Position numbers and translations under genes: made by a program. Below the pieces are notes generated by a model that ran no database searches, had not been told where the DNA came from, and worked only from the letters and a program-made list of their open reading frames with translations. A stretch of DNA of 48,583 bases from Guillardia theta CCMP2712. Its lineage: Eukaryota; Protista; Cryptophyta. Below, in pieces: positions 9,832 through 38,315 of this stretch (the stretch's first letter is position 1; each line of letters begins with the position of its first letter). The stretch is taken from positions 1 to 48,583 of the forward strand of contig NW_005434544.1 in the NCBI RefSeq assembly GCF_000315625.1. The letters are read 5' to 3'.

Positions 9832-12800
9832 GATGCTGAGGAGGAGGAGGAGGAGGTCAAGGTGAGATCCTCACTGAGGATACGATTAATGTAGATGCCC
9901 GTGATGTTCGGTAGAGGATGTGTCCGGTCGATCTTGACAGCAGAGGGTGGGCCGATTCTATGCTGCAATGAGGCGTAAGAACGCAAGAGAAGTGGATGGT
10001 GGGCAAGAAGGCTGAGATAGATGATTGATTGATTGAGGTAGATGATGACGATCAGGATCAGAATGTAGCTGGGATGGTAGATGATGACGATCAGGATCAG
10101 AATGTAGTCGGGATGAACCATCAAGACTGAAAGGATGAACACTGACCGTTCTTGGTAGCGGCATTGGGAATCCTTGCGCTCTTGCTGCAGGATGGACTTT
10201 GTGCCAACACCATCGCTCCTCTTGCTCCTCTCAGGTTGAAGGGAGGAGGACGAAGCTATGAGAATGCTGGTCCGGTGGTCAAGGTGTGCTGGATCCTGAT
10301 GGAGGGAGCGTGTGGGCTGATGCTCGACCTCGCAGTCAGTCGTCGAGAAGTTCAGGAGTGTTCACGGCGAAGACCCCAAGTATGTGTCGGTCGCTCCTGG
10401 ACGTGTCAACCTGGTCAGTCAAGACAGTTGGGTCGGCCTAGAGGCCTCTGACGTCTGCGTTTGCCAAGATTGGTGAGCACACCGACTACAGTCAAGGGTT
10501 CGTCATGCCCTGCGCCATCGATTTCCACGTTGCTGGTGAGGGTTGCTAGCTGTGCTAACGAGGACTGACTGTCTTATCAGCGTCTTTCTGTCCTACATCG
10601 GACAACAAGTTGCACGTGATCGCGCTGGATGTCAACGACGAGACATGCTCGTTAGATCTGATCTCCTCCCCGCATATCCTCGCCCCGCTTCTTCCCCCCG
10701 TCCACCACCCCCTGAGCTCGATGCTGACTTGCCTGCAGCATTGATCTTTCAAAGCCGATCGAGAGAGATCAGAGTCAGCCATGGAGCAACTACATCAGGG
10801 GAGTTTGCAAGGTCTCGACTCGACCTCCACCTCCGCACCTGCCCATCTTTTGCACCTTTGACTCCTCAAGCTCCTGCTCGCTGCTGGGGTGAGTGATATA
10901 CATTCACAGACCCTGATGGATAACGGACACAAGATCGGTGGAGGAAAATTTGTCTTCAGTGGAAATGTTCCTCTGGTAAACCGATATCTTACAACATGCA
11001 TCACCTACCCCTTGTTGCTCCTCCTCCTCCTCCTCCTCCTCCTACTCCTACTCCTACCCCTACTCCTCCTCCCGCAATCCCTCCCCTTCCATCACCACTG
11101 CTACCTCGCCATCTTTGGCATCGTCGAACTTGATGCCTCATGGTTGAAGTTGGGATGACAGGGGGGAGGGCTAAGCTCCTCGGCTGCTCTCGAAGTTTGC
11201 TTCGCCAAGGCCCTCAATCATGCTTACAGTGAGTACCATGAAGATGTGGCGATGGGATGACGATATAATCATGATCTTGATGGAATGATGATTGAATGTT
11301 GATGATGTTGATGATCGAATGATACTCGAATTATGACATAGTTCTGATAGGATGATTGAATGATGACATATTGACGATGATATCATGATGATATTAGAAC
11401 GATGATATTTGATGGTGATGGATTGACGGGGCTTGTTCTTGATACCTACGAGCTGCTTTCGCCAAGTGTCCAGCGTTGCCGGTGGTGTTGCAGATGAAAG
11501 CTGCTGACTGGATCGCACAGATCTCAAGATCGGGGGAGTCGAGATCGCACAGCTCTCGCAAGCTGCCGAGTGAGTGATCCGTGAATTGCACATGTCCTGC
11601 ACCACTCCTGCTCCTCCTCCTGCTCCTCCTCCTGCTCCTCCTCCTCCTCCTCCTCCTCCTGCTCCTGCTCCTGCTCCTGCTCCTCCTGCTNNNNNNNNNN
11701 NNNNNNNNNNNNNNNNNNNNNNNNNNNNNNNNNNNNNNNNNNNNNNNNNNNNNNNNNNNNNNNNNNNNNNNNNNNNNNNNNNNNNNNNNNNNNNNNNNNN
11801 NNNNNNNNNNNNNNNNNNNNNNNNNNNNNNNNNNNNNNNNNNNNNNNNNNNNNNNNNNNNNNNNNNNNNNNNNNNNNNNNNNNNNNNNNNNNNNNNNNNN
11901 NNNNNNNNNNNNNNNNNNNNNNNNNNNNNNNNNNNNNNNNNNNNNNNNNNNNNNNNNNNNNNNNNNNNNNNNNNNNNNNNNNNNNNNNNNNNNNNNNNNN
12001 NNNNNNNNNNNNNNNNNNNNNNNNNNNNNNNNNNNNNNNNNNNNNNNNNNNNNNNNNNNNNNNNNNNNNNNNNNNNNNNNNNNNNNNNNNNNNNNNNNNN
12101 NNNNNNNNNNNNNNNNNNNNNNNNNNNNNNNNNNNNNNNNNNNNNNNNNNNNNNNNNNNNNNNNNNNNNNNNNNNNNNNNNNNNNNNNNNNNNNNNNNNN
12201 NNNNNNNNNNNNNNNNNNNNNNNNNNNNNNNNNNNNNNNNNNNNNNNNNNNNNNNNNNNNNNNNNNNNNNNNNNNNNNNNNNNNNNNNNNNNNNNNNNNN
12301 NNNNNNNNNNNNNNNNNNNNNNNNNNNNNNNNNNNNNNNNNNNNNNNNNNNNNNNNNNNNNNNNNNNNNNNNNNNNNNNNNNNNNNNNNNNNNNNNNNNN
12401 NNNNNNNNNNNNNNNNNNNNNNNNNNNNNNNNNNNNNNNNNNNNNNNNNNNNNNNNNNNNNNNNNNNNNNNNNNNNNNNNNNNNNNNNNNNNNNNNNNNN
12501 NNNNNNNNNNNNNNNNNNNNNNNNNNNNNNNNNNNNNNNNNNNNNNNNNNNNNNNNNNNNNNNNNNNNNNNNNNNNNNNNNNNNNNNNNNNNNNNNNNNN
12601 NNNNNNNNNNNNNNNNNNNNNNNNNNNNNNNNNNNNNNNNNNNNNNNNNNNNNNNNNNNNNNNNNNTACCTTGCTCCTCCTTTCTCCGAACTTTGCCGTC
12701 TCCTCCTCCTCCTCCATCCTCCTCCTCCTCATCTCCTTTCCTACAGGCACTGGGTAGGCTGCAAGTGTGGCATCATGGATCAGTACATCAGCTCCATGGG

Positions 12801-16201: not shown

Positions 16202-17443
16202 TCTGCAGCAGCAGTTCAGAAAGCGGAGCACAAGGCAGGTTGGATGCGAACATCATGAGGATGCACATAGGGAATTTCCTGTCGTATGAATGCAAACCGC
16301 ACAGCATGGCCAAGATGACAGAGCAGAATTCATGAACAGCACAATTTTGAATGTTGGTCTGGTCGACCGATTTTGCTCGTGGTAAGCACTACATTGCAGT
16401 GAAAATCGTCCTCTCCATCTCATACATCCTGCATGCAAAGTTGTTTTTGAAAAGAACTACAACAATAAATGATGATGTTCTTGGCTCAACACTATCACAC
16501 CCTACGGATCCTGCGACCTTCCGTCAAGGTTCTTGATCATGCCAACTACTTCCTACGAAGAACTTGATGACGTTGTTTCTGCTCTGAACTTCTACTGTCT
16601 TCTGCTCCTACTCCTCCTTCCCCTCCTCTTCGCTACTCGCTGACGATCTTCTGCATACAGCTAGGCTGTATGCAAGCAGATGCATTTGTGGAAGCAGATG
16701 CATTTGTGGCGCGGGGTGAAATAAAAAGGGATCACGACGTAGAGTGATGGACGGGGACATATAGGGTAGGGATATGTTCAGTACGGGTACTTTAAAGTCA
16801 ATAAGTCCTGTTATATTGAGGGTGGGGTGTTTGACCAGAGATGACACTCAGGGGTAGGGGTAGTTCTATAAAACTCACAGTGTAGCGAGTACAAGACGGT
16901 GGGGTGATAATTGTACGGGTAAGTTAAACTGATAAAATGACTGAAATTGTTGGGTAGGGTGGTCAAAGGAACGGGTCCAATCTGAAGGGATCAGGTTTCT
17001 TGAATCGGGGAAATGATAGTCATTCTCACTACCCACCTCGGTAAAAACATGCAGACAACGGGTCAACGAAGGGGTGACAAGATATTGACTAAATATCTGT
17101 ATCAACTGTAAAGTACTACTTCACACTTATTGGTTTTATATCAGGACTTGGGGAACAAAAATGAGTTATTTTTAAAATATCGTTTTAGAGTCAGACTTGA
17201 AAAGTCGGTCCGCCTCAGAGCAAGGGGGATGCGACTCGACGTGAGCTACGATGCTGTTGGGACGATGGCGGACAGCGAAGACGAGGAGCGGCGGGGGAGG
17301 GCGAGGGGGAGAAGAGGAATGCGAGGAAGAGGAGAGAGATATGAGGAATCTGCATAAGAAGGGATGCTGAACAACACAAGCATCGACAATTCCTTCGGTG
17401 CGGAATGGTGGAGAATCATGTGAGGCTGAGTGATGCGGGGAGT

Positions 17444-20340
17444 ATGGTCTCACAGGTATTATGTCTATCAGAACCCTCCCATCCCCTCACACACTTCTCA
17501 TAGCAGCGAGATAATTCCAAAAGTCGACCCAGAACACACATCGCACTCCACGTTGCCTCGGTGCTGTGGATCGCCGCATGCTCTGACAGCATAGTGCTGC
17601 ACGCGAAGCTCGACCATGTCAGTGAGCCGATACGGTCTGTCTCGGCATCCTGGCAGTGGCAAGCGACGGTGATGTCTATAGTGAGCTAAGTTCGAATGCA
17701 CATGCTCATCCGTCCTCAGGCCTACGGTCAGACACCCTGGAAGGCAACCAGTCATCGCTCAGCTGGCCGTCATGAGATGAGCCCGTCCAGCTGGCTTGTT
17801 CAGACGGCGACCAGGCGCCTCTGGCTCCGCGGCGGGGAAGGAGAGGAGCAGGTGAGGTTGTTCTGTGGAACATAAGGGGTCTTGACGGGTCTTGTGCTTG
17901 CCCACTGGTTTCGTGGGGACGCGAATGAATGGTCAGCAGGCCAACAGCTACGACGAGGTGTCAAGCGTGGAGGTGAGAAGGAGGCTGAAAGGCCTGACAG
18001 GCTCTGGCAGATCCGCAGCAAGTTTAAGGAGAAGTATACGTTCGAGCAGCGCAAAAAGATGGCTGATGATATCTTGAGTGTGAGAGGCTTGCCCTGACCC
18101 AGTGCCTTGCTCGTCTCCTCTGACCCGCTGCTAGACGGGAAGGGGGCTGCCGGTGATCGCCGAGAAGCTCCTGGAGAGCATACCCCTCCCAGAGACACAG
18201 AAGCCAAAGTTCCTTGTTCCTCCCTCCCTTCCCCTCGAACAGTTCGTACAGGTGAGACTGTAAGTGGCTGCGGAAGGAGGGTGGGACGAGGATGGGGAGA
18301 GGGGAGATGTTGTTGTGGGAAGAGCACGAGCACGAGCACGAGGAGAAGGACGAGGACGAGGACGAGGACGAGGACAAGGAGCAGGACGAGGACGAGGACG
18401 AGGACGAGGACAAGGACAAGGACGAGCGAGGACGAGTACGAGGAGCAGGACGAGGACGAGGAGCAGGACGAGGACAAGGAGCAGGACGAGGACGAGGACG
18501 AGCGAGGACGAGGACGAGGGCAAGGACGAGGAGCAGGACGAGGAGCAGGACGAGGAGCAGGACGAGGACGAGGACGAGGAGCAGGACGAGGACGAGGACG
18601 AGCGAGGACGAGGACGAGGAGCAGGACAAGGACGAGGAGCAGGACGAGGACGAGGAGCAGGAAGAGCACGAGGACGAGGACAAGGACGAGGACGAGAACA
18701 AGCGAGGTCGTAGTGGTGTGGTGGTAGCGCAGGCTGTAGGGATGTTGGAGAAGACATCATTGACCTCAACCTCCAGATCTTGCGGAAGCGACTCCCTTGG
18801 GAGGATGGGATGGACACGACAGGAACCATCACTCTCTTCTGCGACAGCGGAAAGGAGATGGGTGATGGAGGAGGAGGAGGAGGAGGAGAGGACGAGGAGA
18901 AGCGAGATTGATGAAGTATGACAGCTGCTGGAAAGGACATGAAGGAGCTTTACGACAAGAAGAAGGACGATGACGGATTCTTGTACGTTGGAGCAGCGTC
19001 GGGCTTGCAAACCTGTAACGGCATGCAACCCTCTCTTCCAGGTACTTGATGTATGCCCATACATGGCGGCCGATCCAGAAGAAAGATGAAGTCATTGACG
19101 ACTACAGTGACTCCGAGGTGATCCTGACTGACTGACTGACTGACTGACTGACTGACTGACTGACTGACTGACTGACTGACTGACTGACTGACTGACTGAC
19201 TGACTGACTGACTGACTGACTGACTGACTGACTGACTGACTGACTGACTGACTGACTGACTGACTGACTGACTGACTGACTGGACCGTGCCTCTGTCTGT
19301 CTGTCTGTCTGTCTCTCTCTTTGTCTGACTGTTTTCATTGCGACGAGCGATGACGTGTCATAAATGGTTCTCCGCAGCTCAACAAGCTGCTTGACGACGA
19401 GGGGAACATCCTATACGATGAATACCTGGATGAGGTAAGATGTGTGCTGACTTGACGACTTGTGTTGATGCTCGTGCCTAGAGAACGGCAGACATAAGGA
19501 GGAGTCAATTCAGCCATCCTCGGCTCAAGGCGATCACCATCCAACAGCCTCTTGCAGATGCCACGCTGCTCGGACTGAGGAAGGTTGGGGGAGGGGCAGG
19601 GGGGGGGATGAAGATGTTGGAGGAGGGGACGGTCATGATGGGAGATGATGGTGATGAGATTAGATCGAAGGGAGAAACTACAATGTCAAGGTCCCAACCT
19701 CAGAGGGCCTCTGGCTTGCCCTTCACATCGGTAGAAGTCAAGATCATTTCACCAACTATCAGGTAAGTCGCTCATGAGATGGTCCTGGGAAATCAGCGAA
19801 GCTGCTGCGTTGCTATTGCGTTTCGAAATTTCGAAAGCCTTGCTACCTCCCCCAACATTTGTTTGGAAATTCTCAATCCCAGCCTGTTCCAGCCGTCCCA
19901 ATCTTTGTGACAAAACATCGCTGACTCTTTCTGTCGTTTCTCCAACCGATCTGACTTTCTGCTCCACCTCTCCTCTTCCCCTTCCCCTTCCCCTTCTTCC
20001 TGTCATGATGTCACGTTTCACTCCCTCCTCCTCCTCCTCCTCCTCCTCCTCCTCCTCCTCCTCCTTGACATACTCTTCCCGCTCCTCACCCTCCTCGTCC
20101 TCCGCCTTCTCCTCCAGGTGATGAACCGAGTTCGACAGCTCTGGCCGGAGTGTCCTCTCGTCCCCTTCGGCCGGAAGCGCATGGGCTGCATCGTCGGGCT
20201 CATCCACATCCGGGCCTGCGTCCCTTCCCACATGTGCACGAGCACGTGGAGGGACATCCCCCTCCCCTCGAGCTACTACTTCGAGATAGACCAGGTCTGG
20301 AGCAGCTGAGGATGAGGAGGAAGCGGAGGAAATAGGGAGA

Positions 20341-20375
<35 letters not shown>

Positions 20376-23300
20376 GAAGAGGGCGATCAAGAGCGGTACG
20401 GGAAGGGAAGGAAGGCAGGGAGGAGGGAGGAAGGCAGATATGGAAGAAGGGGTAGGGGGAGAGAGAGGAGGAGGTCATGCTCAGGTGCCATGGAAGGTGC
20501 TGCCGCTTCCGATCGCCATCCACCATCGCCACTCGTTCAGAATGTGGACTGTGGAGGAGTCTGCTTGCAAGCAGATCCAAGAGTTCTTGTTAAGCAGGTA
20601 TGCCACGAGGAGGGAAAGAGGAGGAAGGGAAGAGGGCAGGCAGGCAGGCAGGCAGGCAGGGAGGGAGGAAAGGGAGTGAAGGAGGGACAGGAACACGGAC
20701 AGGGAAAGCGGTAGAACAGACTGTTAACGTGTTGTGTGCGGAGGAAGGAGTAGGGGAAGGAGGGAGCCAAAGAGGGCACCATGGACCTCAACTCATCTCT
20801 TCTTGTACAGGAAAGGAAGATTGTTCGAGTATCCTCCTCTCCCAAAGCCAAACATCTTTGAGGAAGGCTTTCAGGTCATGAGGAGGAGGAGGAGGAGGAG
20901 GAGGAGGAGGNNNNNNNNNNNNNNNNNNNNNNNNNNNNNNNNNNNNNNNNNNNNNNNNNNNNNNNNNNNNNNNNNNNNNNNNNNNNNNNNNNNNNNNNNN
21001 NNNNNNNNNNNNNNNNNNNNNNNNNNNNNNNNNNNNNNNNNNNNNNNNNNNNNNNNNNNNNNNNNNNNNNNNNNNNNNNNNNNNNNNNNNNNNNNNNNNN
21101 NNNNNNNNNNNNNNNNNNNNNNNNNNNNNNNNNNNNNNNNNNNNNNNNNNNNNNNNNNNNNNNNNNNNNNNNNNNNNNNNNNNNNNNNNNNNNNNNNNNN
21201 NNNNNNNNNNNNNNNNNNNNNNNNNNNNNNNNNNNNNNNNNNNNNNNNNNNNNNNNNNNNNNNNNNNNNNNNNNNNNNNNNNNNNNNNNNNNNNNNNNNN
21301 NNNNNNNNNNNNNNNNNNNNNNTCCTGCTCCCTGCACAGTTGCGAATCAGACAACGGGGAAGATTTTCTTTCATGGAGGTTTTCCAGCACTCATCGTGCA
21401 CTCGTTCAACTTGCCCCTCAGGATTTCGGCCCGCAAATGGCACAGAGAATGTACGAGGCATGGGTCAGGTGAGCAAGACTATTGGTCAGCGTACGATGAT
21501 GCTGAATTTGCCCCCTCCTCTCCCTCACCTCTCCTCCTCTCCCTCCCCTCTCCTCCTCTCCCTCCCCTCTCCTCCTCTCCCTCCCCTCTCCTCCTCTCCC
21601 TCCCCTCTCCTCCTCTCCCTCCCCTCTCCTCCTCTCCCTCCCCTCTCCTCCTCTCCCTCCCCTCTCCTCCTCTCCCTCCCCTCTCCTCCTCTACTCCATC
21701 CCTATCCTTTCCCCCTTCACCCTCTTGCATCCCCCCCTCCCTCCCCCCTCTCCCACCTCCATGTCTTTCGTTGTGCCCCCTCGCCTCCTCTGCCTCCTCC
21801 TTCTTGCCTCGCACCCGCAAAAGAGAAACAGCACAAACCATCCGCGAAAAGCTCTACCAGGGAAGGCCAATGTCGCGCAAAGAATGGGAGGACAGGTGGG
21901 ATGATGGGGCAGGGAGGGAGAGGATTGATGCAGACAGCAGGGTGGAGGAGCAGAAGAAAAGTCTGGTCTATCACAAGTTCAAGCCAAACTCCCAGACTGT
22001 GCGAGAGAACTTCTGGTGAGATTCGGAAGAGAAGGAGAGCCAGCGAGGAGAGTCAACGAGGAAGTGGGGGGTGCGGGGTGATGGTTGGGATTGAGGAGGA
22101 GGAGGAGGATGAGGAGGAGGAGGATTGCGATGGGAGGAGGGAGCAGAAGGCTGAGGACAAGAGAGGGGTAAGAGGATGGGAGGGTGACTCGGAAGCTTCT
22201 TCTGCTGAAATATCCCGTCAGGTCCTACAGCGTCTCGGAGGAAGCAAAGATTTACCATGACCTCGATCTCCAAGTTGAGCAGGCTTTGCTGGAGGTGGGT
22301 GGAATTGCTATGTGGTGCAATCACTGTTGTACTGTGCAACGTGTACCTCTGCCCTCTGACTTTTTTTCCGAATGTGAGTGGTGATGTGTGGTTGTACATC
22401 TTACTGCTGCATTGTTGAGCAGAATGGAACCGTGCCTGAACACCTCAAGCCATGTAAGAGTTCTAACAGTGGCATAACCCCCTCAATTCTTTCTTGTGCA
22501 TACATTGTTCCCCCTCCCTCCCTCCCTCCCTCCCTCTCCTTCCTCCTTCCTCCTCAATTTTCCTCCTCTTCTATGCGTCTCATGTGACCTTTCAGACCTC
22601 TACTCTGAATCTGACGAAGACTCTAACGCGACTATCACTCCTGCTTACATGAAGGTCTCACGCCCTTCTCTCCCTGCTGCTCCTCTCACCTCTTCTTCTC
22701 CAGGAGGACATTATAGACCACCTCGGCATTCAACCGCCCGAGCAAGTGCGATGAATGACAAGGTGAAAGGGATGAAATGGTTGATTTACCGCTATCGATA
22801 CAGGTCAAGAAGTCAGTTGTAGAAGCCTTGAAGCCGCTCACGGGTAAGTGTTTTGCCTCCTCCTCCTCCTCCTCCCCCTCCTCCACGTACCCATTCTCTT
22901 CCTCATTGTCTCTTCTTGTTTTACACCTCTTCGCAGAGGAGGAGCAAAAGATCAAGCTGAGATCAATCAACGGGTCTGTCGTCTACTACAACCCGGATGT
23001 AACCACTCGCTACCCTGCCCTTCCGCCCTTCCGCCCTCACACTGCAACCAGGACGACGACGGCTCCTACCGGTTGAGGCCGACGGTTGAAGGTCCATTTG
23101 CTCTCTTACTTTCGGGCTGCTGATGTCCGAGGAAGGGAAACTGCGACAGAAGTTCTCACACAGCGAGGACGAGAATGACCCTCTGTTCGTCCCCAAGGTC
23201 ATCCCTACCTCCTCGCTGCCTTGCTCCTCGCCCTCTCCCTCCCTCGCCCCTGACTCCCTTCCTCGCTTCCTAGGTTGGAAAGCACAAAGCTGCCGAGATG

Positions 23301-24114
23301 CCAGCGGTCGCGGACTACGTGCAGGATCTTATCGGGGTACCGGACAGACTGAAGACCACGGTGCTTTTCTTCTTCCTGAAACTCTTTCCCCCTCCTTCTC
23401 CTCCTTCCTCCTCCTCTCTCCCTGCTCTCTCCCTCTCCCACCATCACCCACCACCACCTCTTGCTCCTCCTCCTGCTTCTCCCACTGCTTCGCCTTCTTA
23501 CCCTCCTTTTCCTCTACCTGCATCATTTCTTCTGCAACCGCCGCTGCCTCTCACGCAAACCTGACGACGGAGGGCAGGATGAAGTCATAATGGAGGAAGA
23601 CGACGAGGAACACCAGGTTTTCCCGCCCCCTCCTCACCTGCTGTCCAGCTGATTCTTCGCGCCTCCCAGAAAATTTTCTCCTTCAAAAAGGGCAAGAAGC
23701 GGAGGCTGCAGACTCCAGCTCAGCCGGTAGAACTCGCGCTAGAGCACGTGGCGTGCTCCGACTCCTGTCACGTGACGTGCTCCGACAGGCACCAGAGACT
23801 GCGCCTGCCGACGGCGCTGCTGGGAAGGGAGCTGGAGGGGATGAAGGGGATCGAGGAGGAGACCGTGAGTTTGACACCTGCGCCCCTTGTCTTGTGACAG
23901 ACTCTCTGCAGCCAACAAGAAAGATCCTGAGGTCAACTGAAGGTTGTCGGACGGGCCTCGGGCCTCCGGCTTGCTGATTCGGAGACATGGCACTGAAGGC
24001 GAAGAGGCTGATGCTGACCCGGGACGATCGGAGCCTGAACTTGAAAGCCATGATGCGGCAGCAGGACGGCGGCAGCGGAAGCGACTCCCTCATCCGGGCA
24101 ATGGAACTCAGTAG
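17444..24114 (+). CDS. Multi-exon fusion protein: putative signal/transit leader with LWLRGG, Atg8-like ubiquitin-fold domain, ASCH domain, long unknown C-terminus
   Basis: In-frame exons checked by length: 18011-18079, 18135-18251, 18777-18861, 18925-18982, 19042-19117, 19378-19434, 19482-19583, 19664-19762, 20118-20294, then from 20485. Atg8-like: SKFKEKYTFEQRKKMADDIL..LPVIAEK..KFLVPPSLPLEQFVQILRKRL..MKELYDKKKDDDGFLYLMY. ASCH: LKAITIQQPLADATLLGLRKIEGRNY..GLWLALHIG..MGCIVGLIHIRAC..LPLPI..RMW. Start codon and the joins beyond the gap 20911-21321 are less certain. Confidence 0.78.
18320..18705. repeat. Degenerate (GGACGA/GGAGCA)n intronic repeat
   Basis: Hexamer array inside intron 18252-18776. 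Confidence 0.9.
19124..19281. repeat. (CTGA)n tetranucleotide microsatellite
   Basis: About 40 perfect units inside intron 19118-19377. Confidence 0.95.

Positions 24115-30230: not shown

Positions 30231-38315
<8,085 letters not shown>

Follow-up and report, generated by a model that had tools for sequence, protein, structure and literature searches.

An expressed gene of Guillardia theta that combines an Atg8-like domain with an ASCH-like domain

The gene presented here is a nuclear, expressed gene of the cryptophyte Guillardia theta CCMP2712, located on the plus strand of contig NW_005434544.1 (RefSeq assembly GCF_000315625.1). The window, meaning the whole stretch of DNA that was analysed, consists of positions 1 to 48,583 of this contig. 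When the exon chain is rebuilt from the sequence, twelve exons with AG acceptors and GT donors yield a stop-free reading frame from 17925 to 20874, in which an Atg8-like domain is followed by an acidic linker and an ASCH-like domain. The features of this part of the gene are listed below.

17925-17972, plus strand: predicted first exon of the minimal model, with its ATG at 17925 (MNGQQANSYDEVSSVE), a GT donor and an in-frame join
17940-17972, plus strand: the only exonic part of that first exon if the leader described further below is real
18011-19117, plus strand: Atg8-like domain, five exons (18011-18079, 18135-18251, 18777-18861, 18925-18982, 19042-19117)
19378-19434, plus strand: acidic linker exon, LNKLLDDEGNILYDEYLDE, present in the spliced contigs X1-X3
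19482-20874, plus strand: ASCH-like domain and extension, five exons (19482-19583, 19664-19762, 20118-20294, 20497-20597, 20811-20874), all junctions found in contigs from three runs
20911-21322: assembly gap (a run of N) that must conceal a coding piece

A preliminary description of this DNA had named ten plus-strand exons between 18011 and 20597, namely those listed above from 18011-18079 to 20118-20294 and a last exon at 20485-20597. Splicing the window by script finds all ten of them present, bounded by AG and GT, and in frame. Their coordinates hold except for the final acceptor, where 20497 replaces 20485. The extent given for the protein fares less well: the half containing the Atg8-like and ASCH-like domains was correctly drawn, but it is only about half of the protein, and a tail of about 345 residues lies beyond it. 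An in-frame stop is found shortly upstream of the exon at 17925-17972.

The transcript evidence consists of contigs from three runs, X1, X2 and X3, one from each of three studies; they were aligned to positions 19283-20910 only. That these contigs derive from RNA is read from their lack of introns, which points to cDNA, and contigs of this kind cannot show transcript ends. Of the words of the stretch, about one quarter occur in the matching sequencing runs, close to the share taken up by exons. The contigs are intron-free and cross GT..AG joints at 19434/19482, 19583/19664, 19762/20118 and 20597/20811. A further step, from 20292 to 20495 with two ambiguous bases, is equivalent to 20294|20497 (AG at 20495-20496), making five confirmed junctions altogether. 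Acceptor 20497 removes four residues (VPWK, 12 nucleotides) and leaves the frame intact; a metagenomic relative, P0001, agrees with this joint and reads FDKVLPLPTAIHH. Before position 19376, the contigs of all three runs carry 30 loose letters, ATGAAGTCATTGACGACTACAGTGACTCCG, that coincide with the 3'-terminal letters of exon 19042-19117. In X1-X3 the exon ending at 19117 is joined directly to 19378, and the joint 19434/19482 follows, as the preliminary description had it for exons 19042-19117, 19378-19434 and 19482-19583. Since the loose end is the end of exon 19042-19117 and the frame is uninterrupted, a single spliced, in-frame mRNA carries both the Atg8 half and the ASCH half. In addition, the contigs stretch 863-866 nucleotides 5' of 19376 and X2 extends 1376 nucleotides past 20871; the gene is therefore longer at both ends than first described. 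One raw RNA run, X14, yielded a single read.

The first domain was examined by profile, structure-database and direct sequence comparison. In a six-frame scan of the genome with PF02991, the canonical Atg8 (C68) scored 140 bits, a divergent protein (C565) scored 57.8 bits, and two exons of the present gene scored 18 and 17.5 bits. Exon 18135-18251 alone reaches 19.6 bits (E 0.0011) against Pfam ATG8, for which the cut-off is 27 bits; none of the single exons, the pieces to which the Pfam scan was applied, attains that value. All of the PDB matches of exon 18135-18251 (19/19) are Atg8 or LC3 proteins. The spliced domain aligns with the canonical Atg8, represented by two joined exon translations of L001, at 37% identity over 87 residues (51.6 bits), and this alignment is continuous across four exon junctions. 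Together, the Pfam exon matches, the identity to the canonical protein and the PDB matches uphold the earlier assignment of the domain to the Atg8 family. Within the alignment, PVIAEK, KFLVP, EQF, LRKRL and DDDGFLYLMY correspond to the canonical PVIVEK, KYLVP, GQF, IRKRI and DEDGFLYITY. As in Atg8, LC3 and GABARAP proteins, a ubiquitin-like core is accompanied by the two Atg8-specific N-terminal helices (FKEKYTFEQRKK); KFLVP, LRKRL and DDDGFLYLMYAHTWRP are also encoded by these exons.

Atg8 proteins are regarded as free, lipid-conjugated modifiers. In contrast to such a free protein of about 120 residues, the domain described here is internal to a protein of about 700 residues, and the C-terminal glycine is absent. 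The domain ends with FLYLMYAHTWRPIQKK / FLYLMYAHTWRPIQKKDEV, without a glycine, and continues in frame into the acidic linker; at this point it reads YAHTWRPIQKKDEVIDDYSDSE, compared with YNGESVFGA (FLYITYNGESVFGA) at the canonical end. Because the glycine is missing and the frame runs on, the domain, judged by its sequence, cannot be processed by Atg4 or conjugated to lipid. It is by sequence an Atg8-family fold, yet it fails the defining chemistry of the family. At the docking-pocket positions described for the family, the alignment shows conservation of PVI, K-F-L-V-P, L, Q-F, I, R-K-R and G-F. We take these segments to carry most of the residues of both hydrophobic pockets that receive an Atg8-interacting motif (AIM) or LC3-interacting region (LIR). 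Written as patterns, the presumed pocket-lining segments retained are K-[FY]-L-V-P, Q-F, [IL]-R-K-R-[IL] and G-F-L-Y.

Guillardia theta has a second protein of related construction. The C565 protein (L002, 1419-2270) also begins with an Atg8 domain that lacks the glycine and runs into a long extension. Unlike the gene described here, it has a low-complexity extension without an ASCH domain, and its Atg8 domain is 29% identical to the present one. The open reading frame (ORF) encodes 283 residues, the first 117 of which match Pfam ATG8 (55.4 bits) up to an end reading FLYIRYRLEARKK, after which a Ser-rich extension follows. The Atg8 folds of G. theta thus include one that is conjugatable (C68) and two that are not (the present gene and C565). 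Elsewhere, Rad23/Dsk2-type adaptors and the non-covalent Atg12 of apicomplexans have a ubiquitin-fold domain that serves permanently for interaction and is not conjugated. Those proteins differ from the present one in having ubiquitin or Atg12 folds instead of an Atg8 fold and in lacking an ASCH partner domain.

For the second domain, a family alignment was made from the spliced ASCH regions of G. theta and of a relative, L008, together with the partial relatives P0001 and P0002. Comparison by hhalign with an alignment of 117 TRIP4 ASCH domains gave a probability of 90.2, an E value of 1.5e-6 and a score of 43.3 over 107 columns, spanning the first strand (AITIQQPLADATLLGLRKIEGR versus CLSMHQPWASLVVHGIKKVEGR) through the YYFEID/YGFILD strand. 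By comparison, 40 column shuffles had a mean score of 13.9 (standard deviation 3.5, maximum 26.8), and the reversed alignment scored 11.3. A hidden Markov model of the TRIP4 ASCH domain gave 16.6 bits for the G. theta protein and 21.0 bits for the relative. The LW[LM]ALH and GCIVG strands align with LWIAAT and LLGCVD of TRIP4, and the octapeptide reads G-L-[RK]-K-[IV]-E-G-R. Its general form, GxKxx[E/T]xR, is matched exactly in the relative (GLKKVEGR); in G. theta, where the octapeptide spans the 19583/19664 junction, Arg and Lys are swapped (GLRKIEGR). The ASCH homology is well supported by these sequence comparisons. The full ASCH-like domain claimed in the preliminary description is thus sustained by the profile-profile match and the octapeptide, though not by Pfam ASCH, which is silent on the pieces. 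A phmmer search of the PDB with exon 20118-20294 returned nothing relevant, and an Atlas feature search with P0001 placed an ASCH-bearing cluster at rank 44 (score 0.86), a lead only. The GKER class of ASCH proteins, which includes TRIP4 and EOLA1, binds nucleic acids and lowers the N4-acetylcytidine content of tRNA, for the removal of which the Lys and Glu are necessary (preprint 10.64898/2026.02.27.708502). The gene model differs from TRIP4/ASC-1 in having no zinc-ribbon and none of the other TRIP4 domains. That the gene might be the TRIP4 orthologue was considered and rejected: the TRIP4-like gene of G. theta sits on C9, and the present gene lacks both the zinc-ribbon and the TRIP4 N-terminal domains.

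Relatives of the protein are few. The 59-residue ASCH exon, searched against 1.84 billion representatives, found five true clusters, all of them short marine or freshwater metagenomic fragments; two long matches were rejected as low-complexity false positives. With this query, the 1.84 billion representatives yielded neither a full-length relative nor the G. theta protein itself. A scan of metagenome contigs added six further small loci. Neither the ASCH part nor the tail has a paralogue in the G. theta genome, and the gene is single copy. The most informative relative is L008, a locus of 69% G+C whose ASCH part is about 57% identical to that of G. theta and aligns with it without gaps over 190 residues. 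Its ASCH exons (1126-1254, 1341-1379, 1499-1723, 1887-1943 and 2102-2221) are all bounded by GT-AG introns in phase 0. About 650 nucleotides before the first of them lie Atg8-like exons, IRLFVNEGREPASGPSIGHLHTQRADEDG|FLYLAYADTLRP (…QRADEDG|FLYLAYADTLRP), spliced across a 270-nucleotide GT-AG intron. Once again the Atg8-like domain ends without a glycine (FLYLAYADTLRPLLP / YADTLRPLLPSS). The Atg8-like exons, the ASCH exons and the tail of L008 fall on one strand within 3 kilobases. Since the same order occurs in L008, the arrangement of Atg8-like domain, ASCH domain and tail is, on the sequence comparison, older than G. theta.

Beyond the ASCH-like domain, exons chained by GT-AG introns give a stop-free model of the conserved tail. 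These exons are a sequence model, and those after 22998 are the least certain.

21340-23977, plus strand: conserved tail, predicted exons 21340-21468, 21824-21895, 21941-22015, 22222-22294, 22423-22453, 22596-22654, 22704-22745
Continuation, plus strand: predicted exons 22804-22843, 22937-22998, 23052-23084, 23132-23197, 23274-23336, 23578-23616, 23649-23864
Last exon, plus strand: predicted to begin at 23901 or 23912, its stop codon finishing at 23930 or 23977

About 345 residues of tail are encoded by the fourteen chained exons and the last exon together. Whereas exon 20811-20874 stops on a codon boundary (phase 0), exon 21340-21468 opens with one base that completes a split codon; because of this phase mismatch, coding sequence must be hidden in the gap at 20911-21322. 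The exons before the last sum to 1000 nucleotides, which fits the 1373 nucleotides of contig past 20874 once the hidden piece and a 3' untranslated region (UTR) of a few hundred bases are allowed for. The tail is colinear with long ORFs from three uncultured lineages, P0016 (L009), L007 and L021, with which it shares the blocks RETAQ[TV]IR[ED]KL, PAYM, I[DE]HLGI.PPE.VK[KR]SV, PLT.EE, DDG[ST].R[LM]RP and [FY]VPKVG.H[KR]. An intron of L007 falls inside IIDHLGI|PPEMVK and is missing from L009. The tail matched no Pfam family and had no Atlas neighbour, and protein homology searches with the P0016 tail and with a neighbouring ORF of L007 each found only the query itself. A structure predicted for P0016:100-345 had a predicted local distance difference test score (pLDDT) of 41.1, too poor for a fold search.

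The introns of the gene have their own peculiarities. They can be very short: an intron of 47 nucleotides (19435-19481) is verified by the contigs, and introns of 38 (17973-18010) and 39 nucleotides (17681-17719) belong to the model only. The introns are also crowded with microsatellites, found at 18300-18700, 19124-19282, 19990-20070 and 21520-21690; the repeat types are (GACGAG)n-like, a (GACT)n array of about 40 copies at 19124-19282, (CCT)n and a CT-rich tandem repeat of about 19 nucleotides. In the relative L008, introns carry copies of a repeat of about 40-60 nucleotides, at 1-58, 601-659 and 814-872, in both orientations (…CCCGTACTAATCGGACACGCCGCGTCCCT…), with arms that are up to 95% complementary. 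It also occurs in L007 and resembles a mobile, intron-borne element. Four runs of N interrupt the window, at 20911-21322, where the coding sequence is broken, and at 11691-12666, 30971-31070 and 32420-32519.

Taken together, the gene model would encode about 700-750 residues of protein, possibly preceded by an import leader. Its parts, in order from the N- to the C-terminus, would be an internal Atg8 fold, the acidic linker, the ASCH-type (PUA-like) domain, which bears a near-canonical GxKxxExR octapeptide, a further acidic stretch and a conserved tail of about 220-340 residues. The Atg8 fold is most likely a built-in, non-conjugated docking module for short motifs of the AIM/LIR type, because it has no end that could be cleaved or lipidated and yet keeps most of the pocket residues. 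The motifs that it docks could reside in partner proteins or within the same protein. Two candidate AIM cores, both in an acidic context, are encoded by the gene itself. One, SYDEV, lies at 17949-17963, sixteen residues before the Atg8-like domain. The other, IYHDL (KIYHDLDL), lies in the tail at 22253-22264 and aligns with KIRWADLL in L021 (WADL) and KLRWDEFA in P0016 (WDEF). In pull-downs, the C53 protein of G. theta binds ATG8 and UFM1 via shuffled AIMs (PMC10183829), so possible partners exist in this organism. The ASCH domain would bind, and possibly deacetylate or otherwise process, RNA or another nucleic acid. In this way the protein could couple a nucleic-acid or ribonucleoprotein substrate to partners bearing Atg8 motifs. 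The preliminary description had likewise proposed the docking of AIM/LIR partners, along with a possible link to RNA or ribosome quality control; both are inferences. For the explanation as a whole, an expressed multidomain gene with a fixed Atg8 docking module and an ASCH nucleic-acid domain, our confidence is moderate.

Several observations weigh against this explanation. Pfam ASCH (PF04266) found no match in the window in a six-frame scan of the genome, nor in single exons or the pieces of relatives, searches that covered pieces of the domain. As a positive control, the TRIP4-like ASCH domain of G. theta scored 39.4 bits with PF04266, and TRIP4 on C9 was the only match in the six-frame genome scan; this TRIP4-like ORF shares 99% identity with a UniRef protein of Guillardia theta. 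Structure prediction for a partial relative (P0001:1-113) gave a pLDDT of 38.5, too poor for a fold search. In the octapeptide of the G. theta protein, Arg occupies the position of the catalytic Lys and the Lys comes one position later; catalysis may therefore have been lost. In the Atg8-like domain, the Arg that precedes Pro-Val-Ile in canonical Atg8, one basic residue, has likewise been lost, and this half diverges faster than the other, with about 28% identity to L008 as against 57% for the ASCH half. The candidate AIM motifs are short, and their conservation is partial. Lastly, the junctions of the Atg8 exons (18079 to 19042) and the 5' end are unseen in reads, although the continuous Atg8 alignment crosses those junctions.

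The faster divergence of the Atg8-like half and the failure of its single exons to reach the Pfam cut-off would also be expected if this part were a degenerate ubiquitin-like domain that docks no motifs and serves, for instance, to give structure or solubility or as a handle for another receptor. The function would then reside in the ASCH domain and the tail, for example in nucleic-acid binding or the removal of N4-acetylcytidine. Such a division of labour is in keeping with the activities of GKER-class ASCH proteins (10.64898/2026.02.27.708502) and with the recovery of the tail, more widely than any other part, from L007, L009 and L021. It accords poorly with the pocket-lining residues, which are mostly kept along with the Atg8-specific N-terminal helices, and with the retention of a glycine-less domain in a relative whose identity is only about 57%; the loss of the octapeptide Lys to Arg in G. 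theta also speaks against it. We consider an inert Atg8-like part unlikely, if credible. It is far harder to view the fusion as a precursor that is cut to release a free Atg8-like modifier, in the manner of Atg4 acting on Atg8 precursors or of the ubiquitin-ribosomal protein fusions. Natural Atg8 and ubiquitin are indeed made with C-terminal extensions. However, the fold ends without a glycine, and has none close to its end, both in G. theta (YAHTWRPIQKKDEV) and in the relative (YADTLRPLLPSS), and a canonical Atg8 ending in FGA is already encoded by C68, so that release of a modifier would be very improbable. An artefact, whether neighbouring genes joined by the assembly or by read-through, or open frames arising by chance, might be suspected from contigs that cannot show transcript ends, from runs whose RNA nature is guessed and from the lone read of X14. 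Against this stand the identical intron-free contigs with exact GT-AG joints from three runs of three studies, the unbroken frame across the domain boundary, the matches of both halves to protein families and the order of parts kept in a distant relative. An artefact is largely excluded by this evidence and scarcely believable.

An alternative of a different kind concerns where the protein works, and it depends on a possible N-terminal leader upstream of the minimal first exon. The leader exons belong to a sequence model.

17405-17455, plus strand: possible leader exon, starting alternatively with the ATG at 17444
17504-17680, plus strand: possible leader exon
17720-17851, plus strand: possible leader exon

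In this model, GT-AG introns of 48, 39 and 88 nucleotides (17456-17503, 17681-17719 and 17852-17939) clear all in-frame stops, and the exons join 17940 in phase 0. The predicted leader of about 115 residues has a hydrophobic, signal-like core, IALHVASVLWIAACS, with a mean Kyte-Doolittle value of 1.93 over 15 residues. The core is followed by a 64-residue stretch in which S, R, A, T and W abound and only three residues are acidic, ending in LWLRGG. The make-up of the predicted leader is that of a cryptophyte bipartite targeting signal. With such a signal, made up of a signal peptide and a transit-like stretch, the same protein could work in the periplastid compartment and not in the cytosol; this compartment is what remains of the cytoplasm of the red-algal endosymbiont, and the nucleomorph and its ribosomes are found there. 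Periplastid proteins are told apart from stromal ones by having no aromatic residue behind the signal cleavage site (PMC12136025), and the lack of any aromatic residue after the plausible cleavage sites of the predicted leader points to the periplastid compartment and not to the stroma. The 863-866 nucleotides of contig 5' of 19376 fit the leader model with a 5' UTR of about 70-110 nucleotides. They fit equally an unspliced 5' UTR of about 415 nucleotides with seven ATGs before the ATG at 17925, compared with which the shorter region speaks for the leader. On the other side, the three introns rest on the sequence model, the spacer contains two lysines, and the sole relative with upstream sequence breaks off within the Atg8 domain. 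The chance that the predicted leader is real appears about even. That the protein both carries the bipartite leader and works in the periplastid compartment is possible, short of probable; it is compatible with the docking-module explanation, since the location would change and not the roles of the domains. A more specific version holds that the leader, with its ubiquitin-tail-like end LWLRGG, imports into the periplastid compartment an ASCH RNA-handling factor permanently tagged with a non-conjugatable, host-derived Atg8 fold. The tag would bring AIM-type partners to nucleomorph-encoded RNAs or relict 80S ribosomes. We regard this version as a doubtful prospect. If true, it would mean Atg8-based recognition without autophagy in a compartment derived from a red alga. 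Red algae have been reported to lack ATG genes.

Both domains of the protein come from known families. What appears to be undescribed is their combination, the internal and non-conjugatable Atg8 fold, and the conserved tail. The preliminary description knew of no account of such an architecture, and full-text searches of the literature found no paper combining "ASCH domain" with "Atg8" or "ubiquitin-like", and only one irrelevant paper containing the phrase "Atg8-like domain". The gene offers a case in which an Atg8 fold has been hard-wired into a larger protein and has lost its glycine; two distant lineages or more keep it beside a nucleic-acid domain. If the docking-module explanation is true, the docking surface of Atg8 would be reusable as an ordinary interaction domain outside the biology of the autophagosome. 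The gene also provides a clonable object for asking what roles eukaryotic ASCH domains play beyond TRIP4 and EOLA1. Should the leader prove real, the protein would be a candidate RNA-handling factor for the poorly known set of proteins in the cryptophyte periplastid compartment.

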